Positions 2,920 through 26,700 of a stretch of 64,000 nt of DNA are shown piece by piece (position 1 is the first letter of the stretch; each line of letters opens with the position of its first letter). The notes beneath the pieces are model-generated. The model worked only from the letters and a program-made list of their open reading frames with translations. It searched no databases and was not told the DNA's origin. The position numbers were made by a program, and so were the translations under genes. The stretch is from Fimbriosthenelais zetlandica (lineage: Eukaryota). The DNA lies in contig OZ365113.1 in NCBI GenBank assembly GCA_977030845.1, positions 13,268,001 through 13,332,000 of the forward strand. The letters run 5' to 3'.

Positions 2920-5900
2920 CTGTCAGGGGAAGAATTACAGCAAATGACATTTTAGCACGTTTTAAGGTGTTCTCTTGACTGAAGCATGCAGAGCCAGAGG
3001 GTCCTATTTTAAATCTAACAATTCTTTGTTTCTTTTTGTAACAAAATTAACTTCAAAATTAACAAAGAGGACCCTAGAAAAGCACTGAACACTCTAATAT
3101 GTTATGAGATAACGAATTCAGTAAGAAACGAACCATTGAAATAGATAATTATTATTTATCGATGGTTGAACGGGGAAATCTTATATCAAAAAGTATTGGG
3201 TTTAGATACACATGATATGTTGGCCTAATCGATGAAAAGGAATATTGCTGATATGTATAAAGATCTATAAGGGTGGATGATGGGGACCATTGTGATAACA
3301 CACACTTTATACGAAACTCGGTACAGTTGATTGCTAATCTTCTGAAAAAATAATAAGCTATTATTTCAAACGTGCCTACTACTATTATAGATATTTTACG
3401 GTCTGATTATCACAGAGGATCCGGAGATCCAAAATCCATTAATTGTCAATAAATAAACCATGTCAACATAGAGAGAAGCGGGTAATGATATACAGGATGA
3501 TACAATCTAATTACTATTGTTTTATGGCTCATTGTTATACATACCTATCTCCAGCAATGATGGGTTTCCTATCGTCTGCCATGTTAATGGACCGAATCTG
3601 ATGACAATATCTTCTTTCCACCCTCGAGATTAGTAGGCAGGAAATCCCGGACTATGGACTCACCTTCTACTTGTAAATATCATCATTAGTTAAATCCTCT
3701 TTTAAAAAAAATGAAGGTCACTGGAGGAAACGTAAATTTAGGCCTATAGATGAGCAGAACCGTTCCTAGAAATTCAGTTTTCATCCAATGCAAAGATATT
3801 TTACACTGGATCTTTGCCACAAGACCAATACATGAATAGTGTACTGACTGAACAAAAGGTGACATTCAGTAATTCCCTCCCAGGCAATGAAGTTCGTGTC
3901 ATGTGCACAGTCACATCCGGAGGGGCGTGTGCGAGTGGAAGGGGCTTGACCTGAGGATTCTGGGATAAGTGATACAAGGTTAGATCACAATATTGAGTGG
4001 GATCCGACACCAGTCGTCCACCGCATACAGTCCACTTAGGTTGAACTTTGCTCAAAGTTATGCAGGACCATAATAGATAATATTCCATTTAACACGAGTC
4101 CACACAACATACTGAGCAACTGTATATAACGAGTCACAGGTGCAGTTATGTTGGCATCCAGTGCATATTTTCGTGCAGTCATGTCAGCTCTTTAAATAGA
4201 ATATTATACAATTTGTCGTATCTATAATACCTACATTGCAGCAAGCTTAGTACGAATCCATGCAGTGCACTGAAGTCCAAAAATAATTGTCCCAAATCCA
4301 GTGACCTTGCTTTTCAATAAGGATAGCTTAGAACAAAACTGACCCACAACTGATAAGTACGTAATCATCCAAAATTGTAAGTGGTAGTCTCCTATTGCAC
4401 CACCACTAAGATATTTGCCTGGTGCACATAGTATACCTAATATATAGGTCTATGACACAGATTCGAGTTGGTAAAGTGACAGACCGTGGTACTAAAAGTT
4501 TTCTCTGGGAAGTGAAGGATCCGGGATCCAGCAGTGCCCTTTTGCTACTGGACTCCTCTCATAGCGATGGTGAAATGCAGCCTGGAGGAGGGGTGTGGAG
4601 GAGGGGCTGGTAGTAGGGGGAGAGATCAAACTAGTCTGGAGCTATACGAGGCACTCTAAGCCACTGACTGGCTGGATATATCCCCAATTTCTCTCTCATT
4701 CACTCTTTTCTCTCTTTGTTTGGATCCTACCACAATCAAGCCCACTCCAATCAGTATACATTTCACTGCCAACTGTTGCCTTCCAATAAGGAAATAAGAA
4801 CATCATGCATATTCAAATATTTATAAACGTAAACGTTAACATTATTAACTTTTTGAGGAAAATGAGCAAGGCCTGGATCCAACATGGCTATTTAAAATAG
4901 GGCATAGGACAAAAAATACCCCTTTCGTAATTAAATTGGTATCCTGGTCGATAATCAAGCCGTAGCCTACATTATATATATATACTTCTCTCTTGTCTTG
5001 AGGCAGAAATCCCTATGTATATCTAGTTATCAATTTACTGATCAGAATATATAGATGCTATACACTCCTCAGTCTTGCAGTTGTGTCAGTTCTCATAATG
5101 AAAATATGAACCTGAAAACAATCCAATTAAAAAAATCGAAAATAAGTTCCCGACTGCAACTTCTTAAGGTGCCACTTTTGGAGGTATACGTGCAAGTCTA
5201 TGCAAGTTTCAAATTTTGCAAGACTGGAAAATATGTTTCTTTGTCAGTGTGGGTAAGCTCCAGCAATGATTATCTTGTCATCATGTTCATGTATGAGAAA
5301 CAATTGGAGAGGATAGGTTACACATGCCTACATTCCCTTGTTCAAATAGTCGGGACCCCACTCAGACACACATCTATAACTCAGCTCCTCAAAGGCATCA
5401 GTATCTCTGTTAGTCTGAGGTATCTGGTTCCACATCTTGTTCTCCATCTTTCATGGTGATCCATTGGACGGACTACATCTTTTTTTAAATCTGCCATAAA
5501 TAATCTTTATAAATAGACCCCTACGGTATGAATAGATGCTTGAAAATACCAATATAGAATGCCAGGATACAGCTATACAGTTTATTTTCAGTCATGTATA
5601 TCCTCCAACTACCCACTGAATTAATACAGCAGTTTGTCTATTTCAGGGTCAAGACATGTATACATACACCGTCATATGGAATCAGTGTATATCTACAGCT
5701 AGCCGGGTCATTTACATGGTCTACATAGAATATAGAATATAGATCTCCCACGTTCTGGACACTGTACCAACCATCTCACGCCACAGGACCTATATAGCCT
5801 CAGTCCTGTAAGAAGATAAATTTGATGGCTTGACTCATGGTCCATCATTTTTCAGCCAGCATATCAGACCTGGGACATGGGGAAGTAATTGTTAGAAATG

Positions 5901-8131: not shown

Positions 8132-11100
8132 TATTGTTACTTTGGGTACTGACCCATAACTTATATGTTATGGTCATGGGCTGGAGCCTGTATTGTTTCC
8201 AACCATATAAACCCAGACTGATTGCATTCAGCCTGGTCTCATACTTTATCATCCTGTTTTTTTTATCAGTTTACACATGGCTCTGTATGGACAATTATGT
8301 AAGATTGATCTGATGTTCAGGATAGTTTGATCAATGCGGTAAAAAATCATTCGTTCAACTTTCAAGAAATCTTGGAGGAATAAACTTTCAGAAGATCAAT
8401 TCTATAAACACTCAAACTGAACCACAAACAATAGTATCAGTAAATGAAGGAAGGAAATTATTGATCGATGAGGTTAATCGATTGATGAGCTTATGGTAAT
8501 GAATGGACTTAAGGTACATATTAGTGTTCCTTGTTCCAGGTTCGGGCCGGAGATTTTACTGCCTAGGTCTGATGAGGCTGGTTGTAAGCTACCACAGTGG
8601 CCATTTTACAGGCATGAGAATCTCCTGTAATCATATTGACTAACGTGATAGGCATGAATAAAGTGTCACCAGTTTGGTTCCATACAACAGAATCCTTACC
8701 TTATTATGCAGCATTGGTATATTATCGAGGAATGCTATAGTCAATGTGTACTGGTTCGGTTCAAATAGGAAAGAACAATAAAAATACAAAGGGCATTATT
8801 GCTACTGGCATTAAACTTGTGCTTACAACAGAATGCCTATGGCAGTCATGCATAAAAGAGCACTAATACCTATGAGCCAAATATTTAGAGGCATTACTGA
8901 TATTTATTCCACTATACCGGTATGCCTAATGGTACGCTGGAAAAGGCAACTAGCAATGACTTCACGCCAGCACAATCCACCAAGCAGTCATGCAGGCCCC
9001 ATATATTCATGGGCCACAGCAACGAAAGATGCAATATAGGGTGTCACATTTATCATCTAAGATTACTCTCGAATTCTTTTGCACACTTGTATATTTGATA
9101 ACTTAATTTATCTCATCTCATCTCAAATATTGGAAAGCTTTCATATACTTGTTATAGACCAGACACCAGCGTACGCAGTGTTATTCGTTGACAAATATTC
9201 TCCAGCATCGCCATAAGTGTGATGCCCCATTCCACACCAAAGGATTGCCAACATATCACACGATTGCAAACATATCAAAAAATAAGCGATCAAAAGAGGT
9301 ATCTCTCTGTAGATTATCTTATTTCTGTATAAAAGGGATATTGTCCAGAACTATGCATAGGTATATTGCTATAGAATATAAAATAGATGTTTCAAGAGAA
9401 TTAACCAGAAGTCCCTGCACACCACATCTCATTCAAAACCATATCAGAATTTATATCCAAATTGCTAGTGGAAAAGCAGCATGCATTCTGTTAGTTATCA
9501 AAACTAATTATTTTTTCATTTCTGTCCTCATATCTAGTGAGTACATTTATAACGCTGTAATCCTTCATTATTTGAAAACCCCATAAATTAATGTCTATTA
9601 TGGATATTATGGGTGGTATTCAGTTGATTTGATCACAGAAGTGTCTTATTGAAAGAGGCCAAAGGAGGGTCGTTATGATTTACATATACATAGAATCTTG
9701 GTCATTTCATTAGCAAAATGACTAGCACCCGCCCTAGCTCGCGGCCTATAATTTCCGAATTATTGATATTATCATTATTGCACCTTGCACCATTCAGTTT
9801 TGCAAGGGCCAGGAGGAACTAGATCCCCCAATTGTACAATTTCCAACGTTGATTCAAGAGCCTATGATGTACTCATGGCATCCCGGGAAGAATATAAATC
9901 ACACGGAGAGAGGATAAATATTATGATCAATTCATAAGTGAATGTTGTTATTCCTCCGAGGTTAGACCTTCCTATATCCAGAAAGACTGTCAGGGGGCTG
10001 CTTCTTATGGGTAAGGAGGGGTGGGGGTATATCAACATCTATATTCTGATAGCTTATCTTTCAGACGCATGTCTCTAAAGAGATGGAATTATACTGATGT
10101 CATCCTAGTGTTCAGAATACCAGCCTCCATTTACTACTCCCGCCTTCTTCCTCCCTGGTCTCTCTTCAATCTATGGATTTTCACTGAGCATGAGATACAG
10201 TGATTATATTGGTCTATAAATCAAAACAAGCCAGATAGACTATCCACCCTACAATCCACTAGATGCCCCACAACCCGACGGGAAACAACCCTTATAAACT
10301 GGGTTGTATGAAAGAAGATCATGACACAGTTTTAATTTTCAATGAATGCATGTACATGTTTATCATTGGATAACCTGAGTGGCACAAGAAAAAAGTTATA
10401 TCCTAAGATATAATAAATATCTCGATAGTTTGATGGATGTCATTCAGAAGGATCGGATCTAAAAAGCAAGTAACTTCTCATATGGATTAATTCTATAATC
10501 ACCATCACAAAGGCAATGGATTATTATTTTTTCCTGCCTCGGATATGATCTGATACTGCAAGCATTTAATATCAAAAGTCTCGTCATATCTTTTTTTGCG
10601 GCTCAGCCCTTCTCCCGCGGGCCTTTTATCCCATCAATTGATAATTATATTGGATATCATTATACCAACCAATGCTTTCCATCTACAAGTGTCATATTCG
10701 CACATACCATGAGGCATACATCTACTGTCTCCCTTTCAAAACAGTGTTAATATGGGCCTATACTACCACCTCTATTGTTCAGTATACAGGGCAGTGACTG
10801 ATGGTTAGTCTGCCAATGAGTATTATGACCGTGTCATTCTGGCACAGAAACGCTGGCCAAACAAATATCTGAACTCCACTAGGAGGCATTTGGATGTTAC
10901 ACCCTAGATAAGATTAGAACTAAATAAACGTTAATGATAGATCCCGTGGGTAAGCACAAGGATTCATTCATCTAATCTCATGGAGATTATGTTGGTAGTC
11001 AGTCACATTATTATGGTCTTGGGAAAATAAAAGCACCATCGAGCAGTAGTCTATCCACCTGGCGGACATTCATCTTTGTGCTTTATATTATGTTGAGGTA

Positions 11101-14100: not shown

Positions 14101-15755
14101 AGCTGAACAGGGGTCGATAAAATCAGGAAATGTGTGTGCAGTTCCACGGTGGAAAGAAGTTAGGGGCTTAAATCTAGCTGACAGCCGGATGATATGATTA
14201 GAAATGACAGGAAGCAAAGAAAATGAGCTGGTATTTGGTACACATGTATAATGCACAGACCAGTGGTTTGGTTGGATGAAGCGTGCAAAATGGCAATAAC
14301 TCGGATACATAGAGGCAGAAACTACAGATATTCATTATAAATAAATGACATAGAGTGCTCCACCTACTACCACCATGTTTGTTCCCCAGTTGCCATTGCA
14401 TATTAAGGTGTTTCTTATATTATACCATCCTTATTTTTGCAAATAAATAAGGAATTACACGAGAATAACAATCTCATAAATTTGTTCATTCTGACCACAG
14501 AACTAAGCGGACGATCAGAGCTAGGCTAAATATTGCAATCTGGTATTTCTAGGTCACGACCTTGGAAATTTCTTTTCCTATTAACCCGTTTGACAATTCA
14601 CATCAGGATATTTGACCCTATTAAACTCATTGGGAAGAAAAGAAATGTTTCCTGACTGGGTTCAATTTCCTGAGTCACTGAATGCCACTTTGAAAGAAGG
14701 CATGGCAGTAAAACACCTTATAACAGACAATGTGTTTAAAACGGGCTCCAAGAAGCTATTGGCCAGCCTTGCAAATGGGGGTTGAAGAGACTCTTAAATA
14801 AAGCTCCTGAATAGTTCTTCAGCTCCCAGTTCTCACCAAATTCTGCAGAAAACTTCCGTAGATGGCTTGCACTAATAATACACTGGTATAACTTTTACAT
14901 TTATAATGAAATAATTAAAATACTAACGAGCCTATATTTTTGTAGTGCAAATATAAAATAATATGAGGCAATTTGATTTCTGTCGATAACGGGTAAAAAT
15001 GTCCAAGAGAACTTTTCTCAGATACCGAGTGCACTAAGTTATCTTCGTTTAGAAAAGGAGATGTATTTTCGGATAAAAACTCTCTGTAGCCCAGGAAGAA
15101 AATCACTATTTCTATCCATCATCCACTCACTTGGGAATTCGACTTTTATCTAATTCCAAAATATCACATCTTCTCTGAGCTCTTGGAGAAGTTCCAGGAC
15201 TGAAGCGTGACACGTGTTATGAATGCCTTTCCTCATGCCTCACAACAAGTGGCTGTGGACTGTGTGGCTGAATGAGGATGCTTCAGTCCATGCATGATAC
15301 GCCCCTGGGACCAGCAAAAGATCCTTCCACTGCAATACCTTCTTCCTGCCATCTGATCATAATGGTGGTTCCTTTGTACGGGGAGGCTTTTACTATTGGA
15401 AGCTAAGCTATATGGGTCGATTATCATCACCCTGCACGGGTTAAATGCTCATAATGCTTAGGCTAACTACACAATATGGCAGGGTTTTGTTGTTGTTTAT
15501 AAAATAAATATTAACTATTACATATATTTTGGTACACGCCTTTACTATTTATTGATGGTATATTCAGTACATAAGGTTTTCAAGAGATAGCGTCCCCATT
15601 ATCACAAATTTACATTTTTGCCACTATGCAAAACTGAAAGAAATGGTGTGTAAAAAGAAGGATAAGGCCAGCAGAATATAAAACCGGAAAAAAATATGAG
15701 GAGAAAATTGGGACGGGTGGACGGTCTTGGGTTCTTGAAGTTTTATGGACTGCAG

Positions 15756-18497
15756 TTAACTATTACGGCGTTTTATCAGTAGGCCCACCAAAAGGTAAAT
15801 AATGGACAATAGATGCCATATAAATAAGCCCATGCTCTCCAGCAATAGTCGCCAAGTGTACCAAGTATAGTGGTCTTTGCTAGAAACCGTTGGAGCATCA
15901 GCGACAAACCAAGAAGTTATATCTTGCCAATCCAAAAAGATGGAAACTGACAAAGCCAATATGAATATCAAGAGAGAGTCTGCTCTTTGTACGTGATAGC
16001 AAAAGGGGTTGCCACAGGCCATCCATGGGCCACAGAATTCTCCCTTTTTGATTTTGAGATGTCGGCTGCTCTGTATTTCAGTTTGACAATTGGCGGATGA
16101 GTATATCTTCTGTTTCTCAACGCGGGGTGTCTGTGTATAGCGTGTTCCCACTGTTGGTCTTATTCCACTCTGTGTACATGCATTGACCTTTGGAGCACGC
16201 AAGGCAAATCCGATTTCACCAGCCTGAACAGAGGTATTGGAATATTTGGATGTTTTAGTCTGTGTTTCTTTAGTCCTGTTTTTTGTTTTCCTTGTCTGTA
16301 CATACATGTCTCTGTTCTGTACGCTGGTCTGTATGCCCTGGTCCTGGCCTTCTGCTGGTAGGGACACCTGTTGGCTTGCCTCTATCTGTATCTTGGCCAC
16401 AGGCCACACATCTGTCTGCACAGCCATGTGCTCTATCCTGGTCTCTGCCTTTCCGTTTATCTGGTTCGATTCCGTCTCATCAATTTTAGTTTGCAGGCCA
16501 CGCTCCACCTACCAATAACAAAGTTAAACCTCCAAATAGTAATTCAGATTGACCTCTCTTTTCGTCTCATTAAATAGAAATCAATAGTGAGAAAATTTAG
16601 GATATGGGCAAACAATTTCCGATTCCTTTTTGGATAAATTATCTAATAATATGACCATTGTGAGGATGGTAAGGATGGTTAGGCGTTTGTTTTTCTGTAT
16701 GTGTGTGGTAGTTGGTGTGTGTATGAGGGTGTTATGTTTGGTGAAGGAGGAGCACCCTAGACCTTTCCTGGCTTATGGTGCAACACGCAAAGGACCTGAG
16801 GCAAAGTCCTTTTCTATATACTACGACTTACTAGTGTTGAGATCTCAGACGGTTGATAAACATTCCTCGGGCAACATTCGTCTAGCTTTGAATCAATCAA
16901 TTTCGGGAGGCCCTGAGGAGGCATTCCTCCGCATATGTGGATTAAGGGGCTGGGGTGGATTGGTGCGAATATAAAACCCAGATCCGAATATTGTTGTTGA
17001 ATATATTATCTACGATTATAACTAACTCTGAGTGCCATGCTTGCAAGCATCAATGCCATGCATTCAGGGCATGCATTTGGATGAGGTGTTTGGATGTACG
17101 AGGATGCAATAAGACTACAATGTTCTGCATGCAATAAGCATTAATAGTGCTAATATGTGCGACCGTTATTTAAATTACCAAGCTTGGAATTGCAATAGGC
17201 TAATGAGTCTGTCCAACACAAATGCTTTGGTCCTGATATATAGAATGGACCATCCAATAAAACTCATGAGAATGATCATCACAAATCTAGCTTACATAGC
17301 AGTGGCCTTATAAGTTATAGTGTATTACATTTCATCCAATTATTAATGAAATAATTTGTAAGTTTTTCTCAAATATTACTCAGATATTATAGGAGTATAT
17401 TTACCTTAGTTACAAGGAGTTTACTTCTGTCATCCGAAGTTTTCCAGGCATCTATCACAGTTTCTATTGCCCGATTCCTGGGAGCATAACGTGAGTATTG
17501 ATGGTAGGGTGTGGTGTACCGACAAGTTGGACAAATCACTGGTGTTAATTCAAAAGGTCGACGAGAATTGAAACCGTTATTATTGTACTCTGTTTTAGCC
17601 AGCATCTCAAGACATCTGAAACAACCAAGTCAAGACAAGGGTTATCCTTATGAATATGATACGACTATATATCAGATAGATTGTTAATTTTTAATAAATT
17701 AAAATAGATTAATAGATGCAATGTATTGAATAATAATTTATCAATGTAGAATAGTGAAATATTGGACTCAACTGCACTTTAGGTCAAGTTACTTACCCTC
17801 GGCAAAATGTGTGTCCACAGACGAGCACATAGGCATCCTGGAAGTATTCAAAACAAATACAGCAGTGAAGGGCTGAAGTCCAGTGGTTGGGGTCCCAAAG
17901 CTCTTCATATGATATACTCGCAACAACTTTCGTATCAAAATCAGTAATGGTAGAATTGTCAGTCGTCTCACTTTCAGACTCAGGTCGGGGACTGGTGTCT
18001 TCTGATGCAAATGGTGCTGGTATTTCGCTATCATGATTTGGTAATGCAGCTTCGTTGGCAACAGGAATAGATGCCATTTCGGACAATAATTGTTGTGTTT
18101 GATGCTGGTTCCCAACTTGAATAAATCCTGATTGCATTGGACCAGAATTCGAAATAGGGCGGTCACCAATGCCCGTGTACCTATTGTCTACAGCCTGTAG
18201 GCCTAGTACAGGTCTGGTTGTCAGAACTCCAAAACCAGAATCAGTCATAACCTCTGTTCGAGTAATATATCCCCTCTCATATGGAGATGGAATATTAGTT
18301 ATGCTGGAAATTTCCTGGAGACCTTGTCCTGGAGGATGAAAAGGTGGCCGCAGATAATTTAGACCAATTGTCTGATTTAGTGAAGAGTTATTTGGTGTCA
18401 TTTGCGTCTCCACAATCCGGCGGGACCTTCGATTTTGTCTGCCTCTTCCCATTTGGCCTTGGGGTCCTGTGTTTGTACTTCTCAAATTATTTGGCAT
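15756..18497 (-). CDS. C3HC4 RING finger protein with multivalent LC8-type xQT motif array and two C-terminal transmembrane segments (~554 aa)
   Basis: Exons 18497-17797, 17615-17405 and 16508-15756. Junctions CGA GG|gtaagt...tttcag|A TGT (phase 2) and ACT AAG|gtaaat...ttggtag|GTG GAG (phase 0); total 1665 nt, in frame. The RING spans the first junction: CCICFEYFQDAYVLVCGHTFCRG/CLEM...VICPTCR. Hydrophobic segments are SLLIFILALSVSIFL and LLLESMGLFIWHLLSIIYLLVGLLI. There is a minus-strand AATAAA at 15548-15553. Confidence 0.85.
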
Positions 18498-19091
18498 TGT
18501 GAGGTCCTAACGTTAGATCCCAGAAATTCAATTAGATGTTTCAAAAATGAGCCTCGGTTTTCCTCCCTCCAAATTGGTTAAATTAAATGAAAACCATACA
18601 CATTTTGAAGGTAAAAGCAAAGTAAAATAACCGGGAAAAAAAATCGCTGGCCTTCGACGACGGAACAAAAGCGGTAACTGCCCGGAAGTGGGTGTCTCGA
18701 GGGTTACATGCTGCTTCCTGACGTCACAAGCCTCGATGTCGCCATGGGGTACAGCCCAAAAACAAGACCAAAGTGATATATTCTGAGCCGTGAAATATGA
18801 ATTTTCTCCATTCATTTTAATTAATTTCTCGGAAAGAAACTAAATATTATAACGGGAATCGAAAAAAGTCTCGTTTTCTAACGCAATCTCATGTGATTGT
18901 ACTATGACGCAACCGGTCGCCGATAGCGACACGCCACCTATGGTCCCATAGTAACATAGGCATAGCGACTCATTGCTTAGTGAGAGCTCTATGGGGAGAG
19001 TCGAGCCACCTACAAGCCACAAGGGGCCAAGACTTTATCCATATAGAGTGGAACTTTTACGAAGTCAAAGTGATCAAAAACCTCCCACAAT
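18498..19091. promoter_or_regulatory. Putative bidirectional promoter between RING gene and BTB-Kelch gene
   Basis: 594 bp between divergent ATGs, locally CpG-rich. It contains ETS CCGGAAGTG (18682-18690), CRE TGACGTCA (18719-18726) abutting CTTCC, and an X-box-like GTCTCGAGGGTTAC (18694-18707). Confidence 0.65.
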
Positions 19092-22000
19092 ATGAAGAAA
19101 TCTGAATCCTTTTCTTCAAAAATGGCAGAACGGTCATCCTCCTCCCGTGTCATGTTGGAGAAAACCCCAAGTGGAAATCACTTTAAGGGTGACACGAACC
19201 AAATCCTATTCAAAACTTCATCCCTAGCCCTGTTGAAAGCCAAAAAACACCCTAAACAATTGCGTACAGATTCATCCTACATGGAAGGGGCTAAAAGAGT
19301 AATGGACTTCATGTGTCACTTGTGGAAAAATGGCCGTTTGTGTGATGTGACCCTTACATGTTCTGATGATGAAACATTGTGGGCCCACAAGGTTACCCTG
19401 GGTGCTCACAGCACCTACCTAGCCAAGCAGTTCGGTGACCAGCCTCTTGGTACAATATGTCATATCAATCTGAACAGATTTCCCGCCCAAATCCTTCGTG
19501 ACATACTCGGCTTTATTTACACCACCGACTTAGAGCTCACAAAGGAGAATATTGACGCAATCTTGGAATGTGCTTTTGAGATGGGGTTAGACTTGTTGGT
19601 TATGGCATGTAAAGACTACCTCGGCATTTGTCGCGTCGATACCGCCCTAGCTTTCCTTGGTACCGCCAAGAAATTCAAGCTCAACGATATCACGACCCTT
19701 CTACTCGCCTTCATCTCAAATAACTTTTCAGCTGTGTGTCAAAGTCCAGATTATCTTGGGTCAGACGTGGCTTTAATCAGAAATATAGCAAGGGATGGAA
19801 TGTTGGGCTTGTCCAGTGAGCTAGAGATTTTCCTGTCCATTGTGACTTGGATTGATTTTGATCGACCTAGCAGGTTGCAATATGCTCCAGAGTTGATTGG
19901 CTATGTACGGATGTTTCTGATAAAACCGGAAGTACTGGTCACCCACGTGGAAAGTGTAACATTCATCTTCTCAATCCCAGAATGCCACAATCAGTTGCAT
20001 ACTGCTTTCAAGTGAGTATAGGTTAAATATTATGTTGGAAGCTATTATATAGAGCAGGGCCTATACTATAGGCCTTGCAATGTTTTCAAATATCCATAAT
20101 GAAAATCAGTCTATAGGATTATTATATTGGGCCTCTTGATTTACGTACCTCTATGGGCCTATTTTTGTACCAATGGGCTACACTGATATTGGCAGGATCT
20201 GTTAATTTTAATAGGGCTTGGAATGCATGAACATTATTTCTTTTCTCACCCAAGGTACCACTCACTGAAACTAAGTGGAAGCAACTTGGCAAAATCATTC
20301 CCCAAGCAAACTCCGAGGTCAGCCTCTATTCCACCCATTGAATCTGAGACTGGGCCACGTTATAGGCAGCAAATATCATTATATTTGGATGGAAACACAC
20401 CACAAGTAATTAGGTTTTCTTTGTTAAACTTTTTCGAACAATCGATCAAATACGATTCACTTTATCACTAGTGAATGATTAAGCATTCCTACCAATTTGA
20501 TTAAGCATTGGCATGCAAATGGCATATTACTAGGCAATTGGCAACCTAGATTCAACTCATTCAAAGAGGTAATTAAAGTGTAATCATTATTCAGTGAATT
20601 AAAGTGGAGTCTGCTTTCGGTTTCCACCCTCCAGGAAACACATAAATGTTATCTTTTGAATAAAGAGAGAATAAGTATCATTATCAACCCTTTGGACCAT
20701 ACAGTTTCAGAGTATAGGCCTAGGACAATTTGATCTTTCAGAACAATGTGCGCGAGTGGACACTCCCTATTGGAAAGAGGAGCTCACATAAGTTGGTGGC
20801 GCCATCTGAAGAAAGAAATGTAAAGTACTCTCCAGTCCGGGATATTGAGAAATCTTTAGTACTTGTGGCTGTTGGGGGCTTAGACCTGCAGGTAAGTTTT
20901 TCTAAATTTCGTGTCATGTTCTGAAAAGGTATAATTAAGCAGATCTTCAACTGAACTCCGAAAAATGATTAGGCCTAGAATATAATTATTTCCATATTTT
21001 CAGAATTTTAAGGCAGAAGTACCAGGGAGGAGTGTTTTTGCATTTGACAATTCTGTTTGCCGCTGGCAATCACTCACCGAAATGAGCTACTATACACATC
21101 ACCATGGTGTAGTATCTATTGGCAGGAGCATCTACATCATTGGTAAATATATTTTTTAGATTGGTAAATATTAAATCCGTGATTGATAAAGAGTTAAAGT
21201 GGGAATATTTTTGTTACATCAAACATCATATTTTTACAAACCTGTGCCTTCAATGATATCTCCTAATTAATTCAGGTGGAGCAGTATTCAACCCCAAAAC
21301 TCCTGATCACATAGGAACAACTACAAGTATGGTCCATGCTTACGACGCCATTACAGCACAATGGCGACGCCTATCAGACATGAAGGAAAGCAGGGCCTAT
21401 CATGCCGTATCCAGCTACAATGGCTTCATCTATGCAATAGGTGGGGAAGGAGAAAACAAGAGGTAATAAACTAATCAAAATTCAAGGGAAATCCCCTATA
21501 ATGTTTATAGAGACAATAGTAGACCTATTGATTAATTTCAAAGCTGATTATCTAGTTTCGAAATATGGTCACCTCGCTCCATCACTACACACCTTTCCTT
21601 TCCTTTTAGCTCTAGTTCGTGCACTAATACATCCCTAGGCTGAAAGTCACGATGCTCCGTGAGCTTAGCACGGTCCTGTATGGCTGTATAAATATCATAA
21701 ATTTAAAAAAAGTACCTCAGGATCGTCTGTTTTGTTTTTCAGGATGTTGGACAGTATCGAGCAGTATGACGTGAATGCCGATCAGTGGACGTTCCTGACT
21801 AGGCTGCCTACAGGCCCTAAGATTGGCCTCAGTGCTGCCGTCTGCAGGGGAAACATGTTCGTCATTGGAGGCTACAACAAAGCCAGGCCAGGCAATCCTG
21901 TCCTTAACGACGTTGAATGCTTTGACATCCTCAATAAGAAGTAAGAATCAATTCATACATGTCTGGACAGTCCATCTCTTAAAAAGCCGGGGCCCTTCCG

Positions 22001-23424
22001 GTTTTCTCATTAATAAGCCCTATATATATATAAGCATGGTTTGAAAGCAAACTGAATTCTTTGAACTCATGACGTCACATGCATCTCCTGAACTCAATTT
22101 GCAGGTGGAGACCAAAAAATCCACTTGGTCAGCCCCGTTGCCATGCAAGCCTGTTGACTGTGAAGGGAAGTATGTATCTGATTGGTGGACGCACCAAAGT
22201 AGAAGGCCCGACTTCCACAATAACGTCTCTCAGCAGCGTCCTCGTCTACGATGACGTCACAGACAGCTGGCGGAAAATAACTAACCTACGTGTCGCACGT
22301 CACGATGCCGGAAGTGCTGTCATTGGTGGGTATCCTGAGCAGGTTTTGAATCTCTATGTTCCCATTGAAGACAGATCGTTGATCATCACTTATAGAATGA
22401 TTAGAAACTTCTATTGATGTGCAATTTTATTAGACCTGCAGGTGAAAACTGGGGTTAAGCTAGCCTATATTTATAAATCCTCTTATTTCGGACAGACTGA
22501 TTTTGTATTAGGCTTATAATGATGTCCAATGAGAATTTGAGTCAAGATCTTGAGAGATTGCAAACCTAGTTGTTGTGTTCATGATGTAGCAGGAGCATGC
22601 AGTCTAGTGGTAGTCGACGTGTTTGTCTAAGCGCCTTGCACTCAATAAAACATTCAATAACAAATTTTGACTAAAAATCACCAAGCGAACTGATTGGATT
22701 TGCAACGCGAGATGACAGCACGGAGTTCCCTCCACGATAGTGTTCTACTCAAGAATATCATCTTCACGGGAAATTGTCTCGCTGCTCGATTGCATTTCAA
22801 TGAAAAAAAAAATCATCCCTGAGCTTGCTTTGGACATGTTTTCACAGAACCACTGAATGTTTGCTTGGGATGAATATTGGTGGTGTAGAAATAGAAATCC
22901 TCTGGTGTCCAGTGAGTACACATTTGTAGAGGAGGCTAATCTTCTAGGAGGAGATGGGTAATTTCCTGCCCAGCCAGGAAACAGCCCCCACCCCACTAGT
23001 AAATGATCACTGATCTCGCAGACTCAGTGTATTGAGTGCCTGACTTGAGTATGTGTCTATGTGTAGCCTATTTGGGGATTTTCCTGCATTCAGTGGATGT
23101 GGGTGTGAAACCTGGGCAAAGCCATGAATTGTATTGCGACAGCCGAGGCCAATCACGCCTCGGCTAAATTAAAAAATGGAGAAAATTACAGTTATTGTCG
23201 AGTATGAAGTCCTCAGGTTACGTAGTCATGTGTAGTAATTTTATTAAATTTGTATTACAGATTCCAAGATATATATCGTTGGGGGAATGACAACACCAAG
23301 TCCTTACTGCCTCCCGTCCGTTGAATGTCTTGACATCACCACTGGTCAGTGGGAAGAGAAGAATATCAACCTTCCTTACAATGCTGCAGGTCTGGCCTGT
23401 TGTGCACTAGACACAGAAATCTAG
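19092..23424 (+). CDS. BTB-BACK-Kelch (KLHL-type, putative Cullin-3 adaptor) protein, ~709 aa, six Kelch repeats
   Basis: Exons 19092-20011, 20255-20405, 20742-20891, 21004-21142, 21276-21462, 21743-21940, 22105-22325 and 23261-23424, all GT-AG, total 2130 nt in frame. BTB signature LCDVTL...AHKVTLGAHSTY, a BACK domain, and Kelch GG motifs (VAVGG, YIIGG, YAIGG, FVIGG, YLIGG, YIVGG). Confidence 0.93.
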
Positions 23425-23748: not shown

Positions 23749-26700
23749 TTACACTTCTGTTTCTCTACGACTTGTCCTACCATTAACATTAGATGAAATA
23801 TCCACGTTGTATATCCTGTGATAGATGTATAATCTCAATCTGTACAGAGCATAGATAAAACATTGGCATAGTGGTGTGGCCACCAAGACTATACCTATCA
23901 CGATAGCAGTAGCAATCCCTGGTTGATTCCAATCAAGAATTACTGGGTAGAGAATATTGTTATCTCTATCTAGGGCCCAGTAAGCAATGCTAAACACCAC
24001 ATAAGTAATTCCATATGCCACTGGGTAAACAAAATGCAAGATCCTGACTGGAATTGCACTCAATGAGATCTCAAGGAACACAATCAATGAGTTGATGCCA
24101 TGGAGATTTATGTCCAGGATGCCAGGTTGATAATTCGGCTCTTCCCGTTTTAACATAGGGAACAATATAAAGAAATAAACAGCAGAAACTACAAAAGCTG
24201 AAACAACTGCTATGTTGTAAAACAACCAAGACATCTTCACAAAGAAGGGGAGGCTTTTAGGTGCAGTTGATCTTCTGGAAGTAGCCTCGATATATGAAAT
24301 GCTGGGAGGTAAGGGAGCCCCCACAAGAGAGGTATTCGTGCCTATTGAGCGGGTGTTTTTGACATTTTCAGTTTCTTCTAATTTAACATGTGAATTCCGG
24401 ACCTTGTGCTTGGCCCTGCCTGGTTTGGATTCCCTCACCCTTGGTTGGACAACTGTAACATTTTCACCATTTCCAACTGGGTTAACTAGTGTTTTCTCAC
24501 TTCTATCTGGATGTAATATGATAGTATGTTTTCTATGTTTAGATCTTAAATTTCGGTAAAATTCTAATTCATCAGGGGTATATGGAAGTGCTGTGCTGCA
24601 GACTCTTGGTTTATGTCTGTCTCTAGGTATCACAGATGAACCACGAGCTTTAGATTGTAATCGTCTGTGTTTTTTATGACCATCATTGATTTCCTCCAAT
24701 CGCACCTCATTCAGATCATTGGCATCTATCTGAGCAGATTCAGATTCGCCTTGTAGTGCATGCAGTGCCACAGCATGATTATGTGTACCACTTCCGGAAA
24801 GTGAGACACGACCATCAACACCTCCATGTGGTGACCTTGATCTTCTTCTCTTCCCTCCTGAGGTCAAACGTCGACCTTTTGAGCGGATTTTATCAAGAGA
24901 ACTATTACTACTCTTGTACTTAAAACCCACTGCTCTCCCTCCTCGATGACACACTTTAACGTGCCTTCGCCGCCTCTGCTTTCTTTCACTTGCCCTCTGT
25001 TGTTGGTCAGGATGAGTAGGTCTACTAGTGTCCATATGATGTGCTCCGTGACCTTGTACTTTATGTCCGGTTCTGCCTTCCACCCCGGCAGCCACTGTAC
25101 CAGCTTCAGTGGATGCCTTACGGGACGCGGTAGTGAGTACATGCTTGACATTGTCATCAGCCCCATCACACTCAGGGCGTCGGCTTCTGTTGCGCCCCTC
25201 ATTAATTACTCGTTTGAGAGCCCCTTCTGCTGGCTGACTGGCTGAAATTCCAGCACATAAAACCCCAACAGACTTCTGTCTGGTCGGCCCTTGGGCGTCG
25301 CCCTCGCTGCCCTTGCTCTGCTCCCCGTGATCCTTGACCTTTGACCTTCGCTTGACATTAGTGACGCCATTACACCCTGTTGATGTGGCCTCCACAAGAT
25401 GTCGCTTTCTGTGATTGTCATCAGTTTTGTACTCGTTATTGTTATACTTGAGGACCTTCTGTTTTCTTTTGCCCCCTGTAGCGGCGATCTTCTTTTTCTG
25501 GCATTCCTGTGGCGGCGGGTACGCCGCTGTGGTTTCTTGTGTGCCGCATGGTGGCGCGCCACCTTGAAACCACGTGGTGATCACATGATTTCCATTTCTC
25601 TGTTCACAGATTTGTTGCGGGTTTGAAGCACTTCTGATATCCTTCCGCCTAGCAGAGTGGAAAATAGTTATAAGCAAGGCCAGAGTGAGGTGGAGACCCA
25701 GCACTAGATATGACCAGTTGGTGTAAAACACAATTGTCACATGACTACCAAACGTTGGGATAGTGACGTAGCCATAAACGTTCCATCCAATGACGTAGCT
25801 TGCAGCCACCAAGCGGTAGATGACAAAGATGGGACGTGGCCACCTCCACTGGAATGAAGAACAAAACTGTTAGATTGTTTTCGGTTACTTTCTGTATGAA
25901 AAAGGAATAGTTTTAAATTGAAAGGTTGAATTTTTCTATTAGTGACACAGTTAAAGCCTTCTTTCTATCCCTCAGTCATGAATCTTGTTTTAGGGGTAAA
26001 CGTGTAAACGCCTACTATCTGTCCATAAGACTTGCTCTTGATTCATATTCACAGAAACGATTTGTGTTTTCTCTTCCTAAACATAAGCTAACTTTGTGAT
26101 AAATGTGGACTTTTCACTGTTTTAATGTACATATTGCCATGGTTACTGATATTACGTTATCTTGGCAGTTTCTCTCACTAGGTGGGCCCTCATGCCATCT
26201 CCACTCTGATGAAACCCTACATGTGATGTGAAAGTGAGTGGTTCGACCACCCTGAGGTATATCCCCTAACCGCCCTCACCCTAGAGATTAATGTCAGCTT
26301 AGTCAGCCTCTTGTTCTTTCTCTTCGTTCCTTTAATATTTCTTGCCAAGAAATACTGATAACAAAAAATCATGCCAGTCAAAGTAAATAATGATATCAAT
26401 TCACAATGTGAATGTTCATCCTAAATAACCAAGAAATAAAATTGGCTACGTATTCAAAGCAAATATTCGCAGTAAAGGACATTATCGTGTTATCTCTGAA
26501 CAACAAGAACTTAAGCCTGAACTCCCAGACCTCACGCGTAGATCGCCAGGAGGCCGCATGGGGTCGCTGTGGTGAGATGTTCTGTCATCGGCACCTCTAC
26601 CTCGTTCTGCTCGCTCTGTTGCCTACAATAGATAACTGACAGGGGGTCTGCGGAGAACGTGGTAGGAGGTTCAGGGTTTGTTTTACATCTTCAATGGAAG

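Follow-up and report, generated by a model that had tools for sequence, protein, structure and literature searches.

The window analysed here, a stretch of 64,000 nucleotides of Fimbriosthenelais zetlandica DNA (assembly GCA_977030845.1, contig OZ365113.1, positions 13,268,001 to 13,332,000), carries on its minus strand three exons which form one predicted, lineage-restricted gene. The encoded protein of 554 residues is, by pattern, a RING-type E3 ubiquitin ligase with predicted ligase activity, and is composed of a disordered N-terminus, a C3HC4 RING, a disordered linker of 156 residues and two C-terminal hydrophobic helices (Table 1). LC8 (DYNLL), first described as a dynein light chain, ranks with the best-connected eukaryotic hub proteins; it is generally accepted to act on disordered partners by dimerising and stiffening them. 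The enrichment of motifs anchored by Gln-Thr (xQT) in the linker, the conservation of these anchors, their binder-like scores and the conservation of the exons together suggest that the protein is probably a membrane-anchored RING ligase whose linker acts as a multivalent LC8 client, with LC8 binding, membrane topology and dimerisation-dependent activity as the predicted parts of this assignment.

The gene model joins three open reading frames (ORFs; 17793-18497, 17387-17605 and 15756-16508) into a coding sequence of 1665 nucleotides, which is one open frame across canonical GT-AG introns. Downstream of an in-frame stop, the first start codon met is the ATG at 18497. The donor of exon 1 is in phase 2 (GG/GTAAGT, the slash marking the junction) and exon 2 follows TTTCAG (junction CAG/A); the donor of exon 2 is in phase 0 (AAG/GTAAAT) and the acceptor of exon 3 is TTGGTAG (junction TAG/GTG). 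An AATAAA element at 15548-15553 on the minus strand, about 200 nucleotides beyond the stop codon, is alone not significant. The RING gene is single-copy within the window.

An exhaustive HMMER search with exon 3 over 1.84 billion cluster representatives returned two proteins only, both unnamed. P0001, which derives from the Logan contigs L001 and L002, is 46% identical to exon 3, and P0002, from a 3.67-Mb contig of an ENA assembly (L003), is 34% identical. On L003 all three exons were found in the same order and on the same strand, with the exon 1 orthologue at 4726-5198, ending in the same donor phase, and the exon 2 orthologue, 45% identical, at 9381-9582. The junctions of this second species (GG/GTGAGT...AATAG/G, then AAG/GTGTTT...TTACAG/ATT) agree in position and phase with those of the window, and its spliced product of 555 residues has the same architecture; the colinear exons and identical introns support a single transcript. 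The exon 3 acceptor on L001 is likewise that of the window. The canonical sites, the single frame and the shared exon order and intron phases bear out, at the level of genomic sequence, the proposal made in an earlier sequence-only reading of this DNA that the three ORFs are spliced into one protein. No further relatives were returned by profile searches with the exon-3 and exon-1 alignments, by a search with P0001 or by two JGI metagenome scans. Feature searches of the ESM Atlas with exon 3 and with its C-terminal 100 residues gave scores <=0.56 to generic small membrane proteins and were judged uninformative.

The RING was recognised with the pattern C-x2-C-x(9-39)-C-x-H-x2-C-x2-C-x(4-48)-C-x2-C. 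All eight zinc ligands are present, spaced as C-x2-C-x11-C-x-H-x2-C-x2-C-x26-C-x2-C, and the full C3HC4 pattern also occurs at residues 136-186 of the orthologue on L003. RINGs contact the ubiquitin-conjugating enzyme (E2) through an aliphatic residue between Cys1 and Cys2, a proline after Cys7 and a basic residue after Cys8; residues of this type were found in both species, as C-C-I-C and C-S-V-C (Ile/Val after the first Cys pair) and as CPTCR at the end of the domain. In the Pfam scan, where the intron-split domain was entered as two halves, zf-RING_UBOX (PF13445) matched the exon-1 half with E = 2.6e-5 and 24.5 bits, just below the gathering score of 25.2, a shortfall due to the missing second half of the domain, and the exon-2 half gave no match. 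The structures in the PDB nearest to the exon-1 half with its N-terminal flank were those of TRIM69 (E = 7e-4), followed by TRIM39, RNF8, TRIM2, RAD18 and TRIM25; the exon-2 half yielded weak matches to AcrIF24 (E = 0.03), which were judged to be due to chance.

The likeness to the dimeric RINGs of the TRIM, RNF8 and RAD18 type presumably extends to the flank after the RING, since we take the APRNR..E.V.D stretch to resemble the helix that follows those domains. In RINGs of the TRIM/RNF8 type dimerisation is often required for activity. The window protein differs from them in its 26-residue loop between Cys6 and Cys7 and in its membrane anchor, and the Pfam scan of the exons revealed no B-box, coiled coil, FHA or other accessory domain. 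An IBR or a second RING was also not found by Pfam in any exon.

The protein ends, as had been claimed, with two hydrophobic helices and the residues KRRNS, and the two Kyte-Doolittle segments that define the helices have counterparts in both relatives. An AlphaFold2 model computed from the three-sequence alignment left residues 1-155 of exon 3 without secondary structure, at a predicted local distance difference test (pLDDT) of about 30, which is a proxy for disorder and not a measurement of it, and placed two helices behind them. The helix pair most likely forms a hairpin membrane anchor. The RING and the linker are predicted to be cytosolic, because the N-terminus is not signal peptide-like and the helical hairpin is C-terminal. 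It was also observed that the loop between the helices (15830-15927, minus strand) and the juxtamembrane residues (GPW..C before helix 1 and DW[RQ]D[VI]TS.FV.D.P.V...D.YT.YT after it) are conserved better than the helices themselves, which may reflect a specific contact in the lumen or between membranes.

The sequence-only reading had named nine regularly spaced anchors in the linker, together with an IVETQM site near the N-terminus. All nine strings were found in 16508-16077. Seven of them are true xQT motifs (LQT, VQT, IQT, VQT, TQT, TQT and CQT), the remaining two being VQA and TQS. Against an expectation of 0.60 motifs of the form [TVILC]QT in 156 residues, none of 100,000 composition-preserving shuffles of the linker reached the observed seven (P < 1e-5). 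Tandem Repeats Finder detected no DNA tandem repeat beneath the array, which is therefore not a recent duplication. The distances between successive anchors (25, 29, 11, 12, 12, 18, 13 and 16 residues) uphold the regular spacing for the central part: four anchors there keep a period of 11-12 residues, at Q364, 375, 387 and 399 in the window protein and at Q282, 294, 306 and 318 in the L003 orthologue, whereas the others are irregularly placed (13-29 residues). The first anchor lies about 40 residues past the RING. Two candidates were discarded. CTQS (Q417) is not conserved in the three-way alignment, and IVETQM, although present as named, has a non-canonical methionine at +1 and is absent from the orthologue. 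A realistic count is thus five strong sites and two or three weak ones, rather than nine or ten.

In the three-way alignment the anchor Gln and Thr residues are invariant at 14 of 14 positions, compared with 26 of the 142 other linker columns (18%; Fisher P = 7e-10), and among Gln and Thr residues of the linker outside the anchors only 4 of 22 are invariant. The earlier expectation that orthologues would keep the anchors while the spacers drift was thus confirmed. The residue preceding the anchor Gln is restricted to T, V, I, L, C and A, and the VQA at Q399 is retained as VQ[AV]G. The anchor codons differ synonymously among the orthologues (CAA or CAG; ACT, ACA, ACC or ACG), which indicates selection on the amino acids and not on a DNA motif. 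As a separate observation, the linker on L003 contains a lineage-specific insertion of about 55 residues (10330-10560, plus strand) with additional IQI and VQT sites, so that the length of the array appears to vary among lineages.

In the LC8Hub collection, which lists 79 validated binders and 32 non-binders, the LC8 motif has been defined as an eight-residue segment (-5 to +2) anchored by TQT (PMC6607443). For the comparison a position-specific scoring matrix (PSSM) of log-odds values was prepared from hand-tallied position counts of the 79 binders, for which the expected score of a binder is 11.0 with a standard deviation of 2.3. Five sites in the window linker score within two standard deviations of this mean (7.9-10.7), while shuffled linkers gave a mean of 0.21 binder-like sites and a maximum of 3 in 5000. 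The relatives have similar numbers, namely five on L003, with RSKQTQTM reaching 13.7, and five to six in P0001. Several motifs are near-copies of validated binders: KETQT is that of the dynein intermediate chain,.GIQT that of 53BP1, MY.QT that of Drosophila ASCIZ and HQ.VQTE that of MAST1. With five motifs scoring in the range of validated binders inside a segment that AlphaFold2 leaves unstructured, the claim that they look like LC8 sites stood, and the linker is most likely a candidate multivalent LC8 client segment, binding being predicted from motif likeness.

Several points weigh against this assignment. The authors of LC8Hub stressed that LC8 fails to bind many peptides containing TQT, and they put the accuracy of their predictor at about 78% (PMC6607443). 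None of the 79 validated binders has an anchor of the form LQT, CQT or VQA; these three conserved anchors were therefore counted as weak or uncertain, and the MLQT peptide of PLK1 is a listed non-binder. The PSSM is a simplified, binder-only matrix, without the non-binder and the volume and polarity matrices of LC8Hub, and consequently the published LC8Pred threshold of 12.9 does not apply to its scores. The conservation sample comprises three species, 30-46% identical, in which an aligner may lock onto the motifs. The RING, being split by an intron, was assessed from its halves and by pattern rather than scored as one domain; the splice junctions were predicted from genomic DNA; and topology and organelle are left at the level of prediction.

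The first two of these points also speak for an alternative in which the xQT array is real and serves a partner or role other than LC8, such as a different binder acting by beta-strand augmentation, a modification site or self-association of the linker, the likeness to LC8 sites being coincidental. Moreover, the most conserved block of the linker outside the anchors, QQVSLPA.G, is not of the LC8 type; QQVSLPAEG may be a separate short linear motif. On the other hand, the shared anchor [TVI]-Q-T is exactly the LC8 anchor, the five binder-like flanks include the dynein intermediate chain core, and no other factor is known to us that recognises repeats of xQT. This alternative is considered unlikely.

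It is improbable, though conceivable, that the gene model is wrong. Exon 3 would in that case be part of another transcript or of an alternative isoform, and the RING and the xQT-transmembrane parts would not, or not always, be one polypeptide. The prediction of the junctions from genomic DNA leaves room for this reading, the public gene callers took exon 3 as a stand-alone ORF (P0001 and P0002), and read-through of the exon 2 donor meets a stop five codons later, from which a short soluble isoform can be envisaged. Yet both stand-alone calls begin in intron-derived junk sequence. The conserved N-terminal edge of exon 3 offers no start codon and coincides exactly, in three species, with a polypyrimidine-AG acceptor, and exon order, strand, intron positions and phases are equal in a second species just 30-45% identical.

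A further alternative, that the linker is an SQ/TQ cluster domain phosphorylated by kinases of the ATM/ATR type and not a docking array, draws on ASCIZ, where both features are combined (PMC10046861), and on the three TQ dipeptides of the window linker. These dipeptides are, however, not enriched (3 against 2.1 expected, P = 0.34), and what is conserved is the Gln with the following Thr and not a Ser or Thr before the Gln, most anchors having V, I, L or C in that position, which makes this explanation very improbable. That the motifs are a chance product of a low-complexity segment, in which Gln and Thr are indeed the commonest residues (18 each of 156), is already refuted by the shuffles and by the invariance of the anchors among Gln and Thr residues that otherwise vary.

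The predicted LC8-client ligase can be compared with several known systems. Nup159 (5 sites), ASCIZ/ATMIN (7-11), Chica/FAM83D (3-4) and KANK1 (15+) likewise carry, in a disordered segment, several eight-residue motifs anchored by [TVI]Q[TV] and separated by short linkers. The central inter-motif linkers of the window protein (3-4 residues) resemble the short ASCIZ linkers that have been studied (PMC10046861), and in KANK1 the array also spans a distance from a membrane-proximal anchor (10.1101/2025.07.16.665182). Outside the motifs there is no sequence homology to these proteins. None of them is a ubiquitin ligase or is integral to a membrane, whereas the array of the window protein has a RING on one side and a predicted transmembrane hairpin on the other. 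Membership in the ASCIZ/ATMIN family is not indicated, as Pfam found no C2H2 match and TQ is unenriched.

Among membrane ligases, RNF5 and RNF185 were proposed earlier as the model for the layout, and the order of a RING followed by two hydrophobic helices near the C-terminus is indeed shared. The two are proteins of about 180-190 residues with an N-terminal RING. Family membership could not be upheld: the RING of the window protein is central (212-265 of 554), and the exhaustive search with exon 3, made without a direct pairwise comparison with RNF5, yielded the two unnamed relatives and no such proteins. The human proteins RNF19A and RNF19B are ubiquitin ligases anchored in the membrane, with two transmembrane helices, for which LC8Pred predicts one motif each, NSMEVQVD and NNMEIQVD (PMC6607443 Table S2), and they are the only membrane ligases found with even one predicted LC8 site. 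They differ in being ligases of the RING-between-RING type with a single predicted, unvalidated site, while the window protein lacks an IBR by Pfam and has a conserved array. In the literature searched, neither ubiquitin ligases nor integral membrane proteins were found among the multivalent LC8 clients, and an LC8 array in a membrane-bound RING ligase was not described. The combination therefore matched no described protein, as had been stated, and with exon 3 devoid of a Pfam match and related to two unnamed proteins only, it does not correspond to an annotated family.

Table 1. Features of the RING gene in the window, with the sites of the xQT array; PSSM values refer to the binder-only matrix described in the text.
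Feature	Positions	Strand	Residues	Remarks
Exon 1	17797..18497	-		start codon, ~205-residue low-conservation Pro/Gln-rich N-terminus, conserved WDPNHW flank, first RING half (C-x2-C...C-x-H-x2-C)
Intron 1	17616-17796	-		interrupts RING-coding sequence
Exon 2	17405..17615	-		sixth RING Cys, 26-residue loop, CPTCR (last two zinc ligands and basic residue), conserved APRNR..E.V.D.W helix-type flank
Exon 3	15756..16508	-		disordered xQT linker, two hydrophobic helices, KRRNS end, stop codon
C3HC4 RING finger	17522..17864	-	212-265	regex match; split by intron 1
Disordered linker with xQT array	16041..16508	-	305-460	pLDDT ~30, motif enrichment, anchor conservation
Site 1, VERGLQTK	16485..16508	-	Q310	QT invariant; -1 is L/I/C; weak on PSSM; P0001 VERGIQTN scores 6.9
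Site 2, EHMAVQTD	16410..16433	-	Q335	PSSM 8.7; orthologues IDIAIQTD and THQAVQTE, like binders RHQSVQTE (MAST1) and RHIDIQTD (RSP3)
QQVSLPAEG	16347..16373	-		most conserved non-anchor linker block; relatives QQVSLQAPG, QQVSLPAPG; poor LC8-site score
Site 3, QDQGIQTS	16323..16346	-	Q364	PSSM 10.7; like NNIGIQTM (53BP1)
Site 4, RDMYVQTR	16290..16313	-	Q375	PSSM 7.9; like AHMYTQTC (Drosophila ASCIZ)
Site 5, RTKETQTK	16254..16277	-	Q387	PSSM 9.6; KETQT core as in dynein intermediate chain YSKETQTP; L003 RSKQTQTM 13.7
Site 6, SNTSVQAG	16218..16241	-	Q399	VQ-x-G invariant; L003 VQV as in ATMIN/DLGAP1 sites; weak PSSM; keeps 12-residue period
Site 7, GTRYTQTP	16125..16148	-	Q430	PSSM 9.1
Site 8, SSANCQTE	16077..16100	-	Q446	CQT invariant in three species; PSSM 4.8; Cys at -1 absent from validated binders
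Hydrophobic helix 1	15927..15983	-	480-498	Kyte-Doolittle 1.87; AlphaFold2 helix 178-204 (exon-3 numbering)
Hydrophobic helix 2	15774..15830	-	531-549	followed by KRRNS and stop codon; Kyte-Doolittle 2.35; AlphaFold2 helix 211-249 (exon-3 numbering)

If the linker is an LC8 client, a mechanism can be envisaged. The N-terminus, the RING and the linker would be exposed to the cytosol, where LC8 resides, and LC8 dimers could occupy the five or so strong-looking sites and another two or three that are conserved but weaker; the four in the centre are spaced by 11-12 residues. On the model of Nup159, ASCIZ and KANK1, the dimers would zip two ligase chains together, parallel and in register. The floppy linker would thus become a rod of the beads-on-a-string kind, and the two RINGs, which precede the first site by about 40 residues, would come to lie next to each other. 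It is known that LC8 aligns two client chains in register and that short linkers favour stable, stacked assemblies (PMC10046861), and in KANK1 a multivalent LC8 array turns a disordered membrane-proximal linker into a rod (10.1101/2025.07.16.665182).

With a RING of a type that often works as a dimer, and with the first anchor about 40 residues behind it, the simplest reading is that occupancy by LC8 would pair the RINGs and extend them from the membrane, and would set the dimeric state of the ligase, so probably its activity, as well as its reach from the membrane. It is tempting to speculate that the protein is an LC8-gated membrane ligase, in which a ladder of five to eight sites decides RING pairing, activity and distance from the membrane, and which reads free LC8 as a counterpart, within the ubiquitin system, of the transcriptional LC8 sensor ASCIZ; this extension is tentative and less likely than not. 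Feedback from such a ligase might then reach LC8, dynein cargo or the contacts between organelles and microtubules.

Other genes were noticed around the locus. A BTB-BACK ORF (19092-20012, plus strand; Pfam BTB 3e-20, BACK 4e-16) and a downstream Kelch-repeat ORF (22079-22414, plus strand) look like a Cullin-3 adaptor gene of the KLHL type. This gene starts 595 bp upstream of the ATG of the RING gene, on the opposite strand and divergently, so that one bidirectional promoter may serve both of these ubiquitin-system genes; a BTB-Kelch neighbour was not seen beside the orthologue on L003. The C-terminal part of a 687-residue ORF (23752-25812, minus strand) matches the Pfam family of 'rolling stone' (Rost) membrane proteins with E = 1.3e-15. 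The orthologous locus on L003 is flanked by reverse-transcriptase (RVT_1) ORFs (1-86 and 17365-20238, minus strand), which points to retrotransposons nearby.

Should the proposed reading be true, an LC8 ladder between a RING and its membrane anchor would be a simple, testable switch of the ligase, since pairing is often required to activate a RING of the TRIM/RNF8 type, and at the same time a setter of its working distance from the organelle. Arrays of short motifs can be recognised from raw genome sequence, and orphan, lineage-restricted genes such as this one can gain a concrete mechanistic hypothesis from motif conservation alone.

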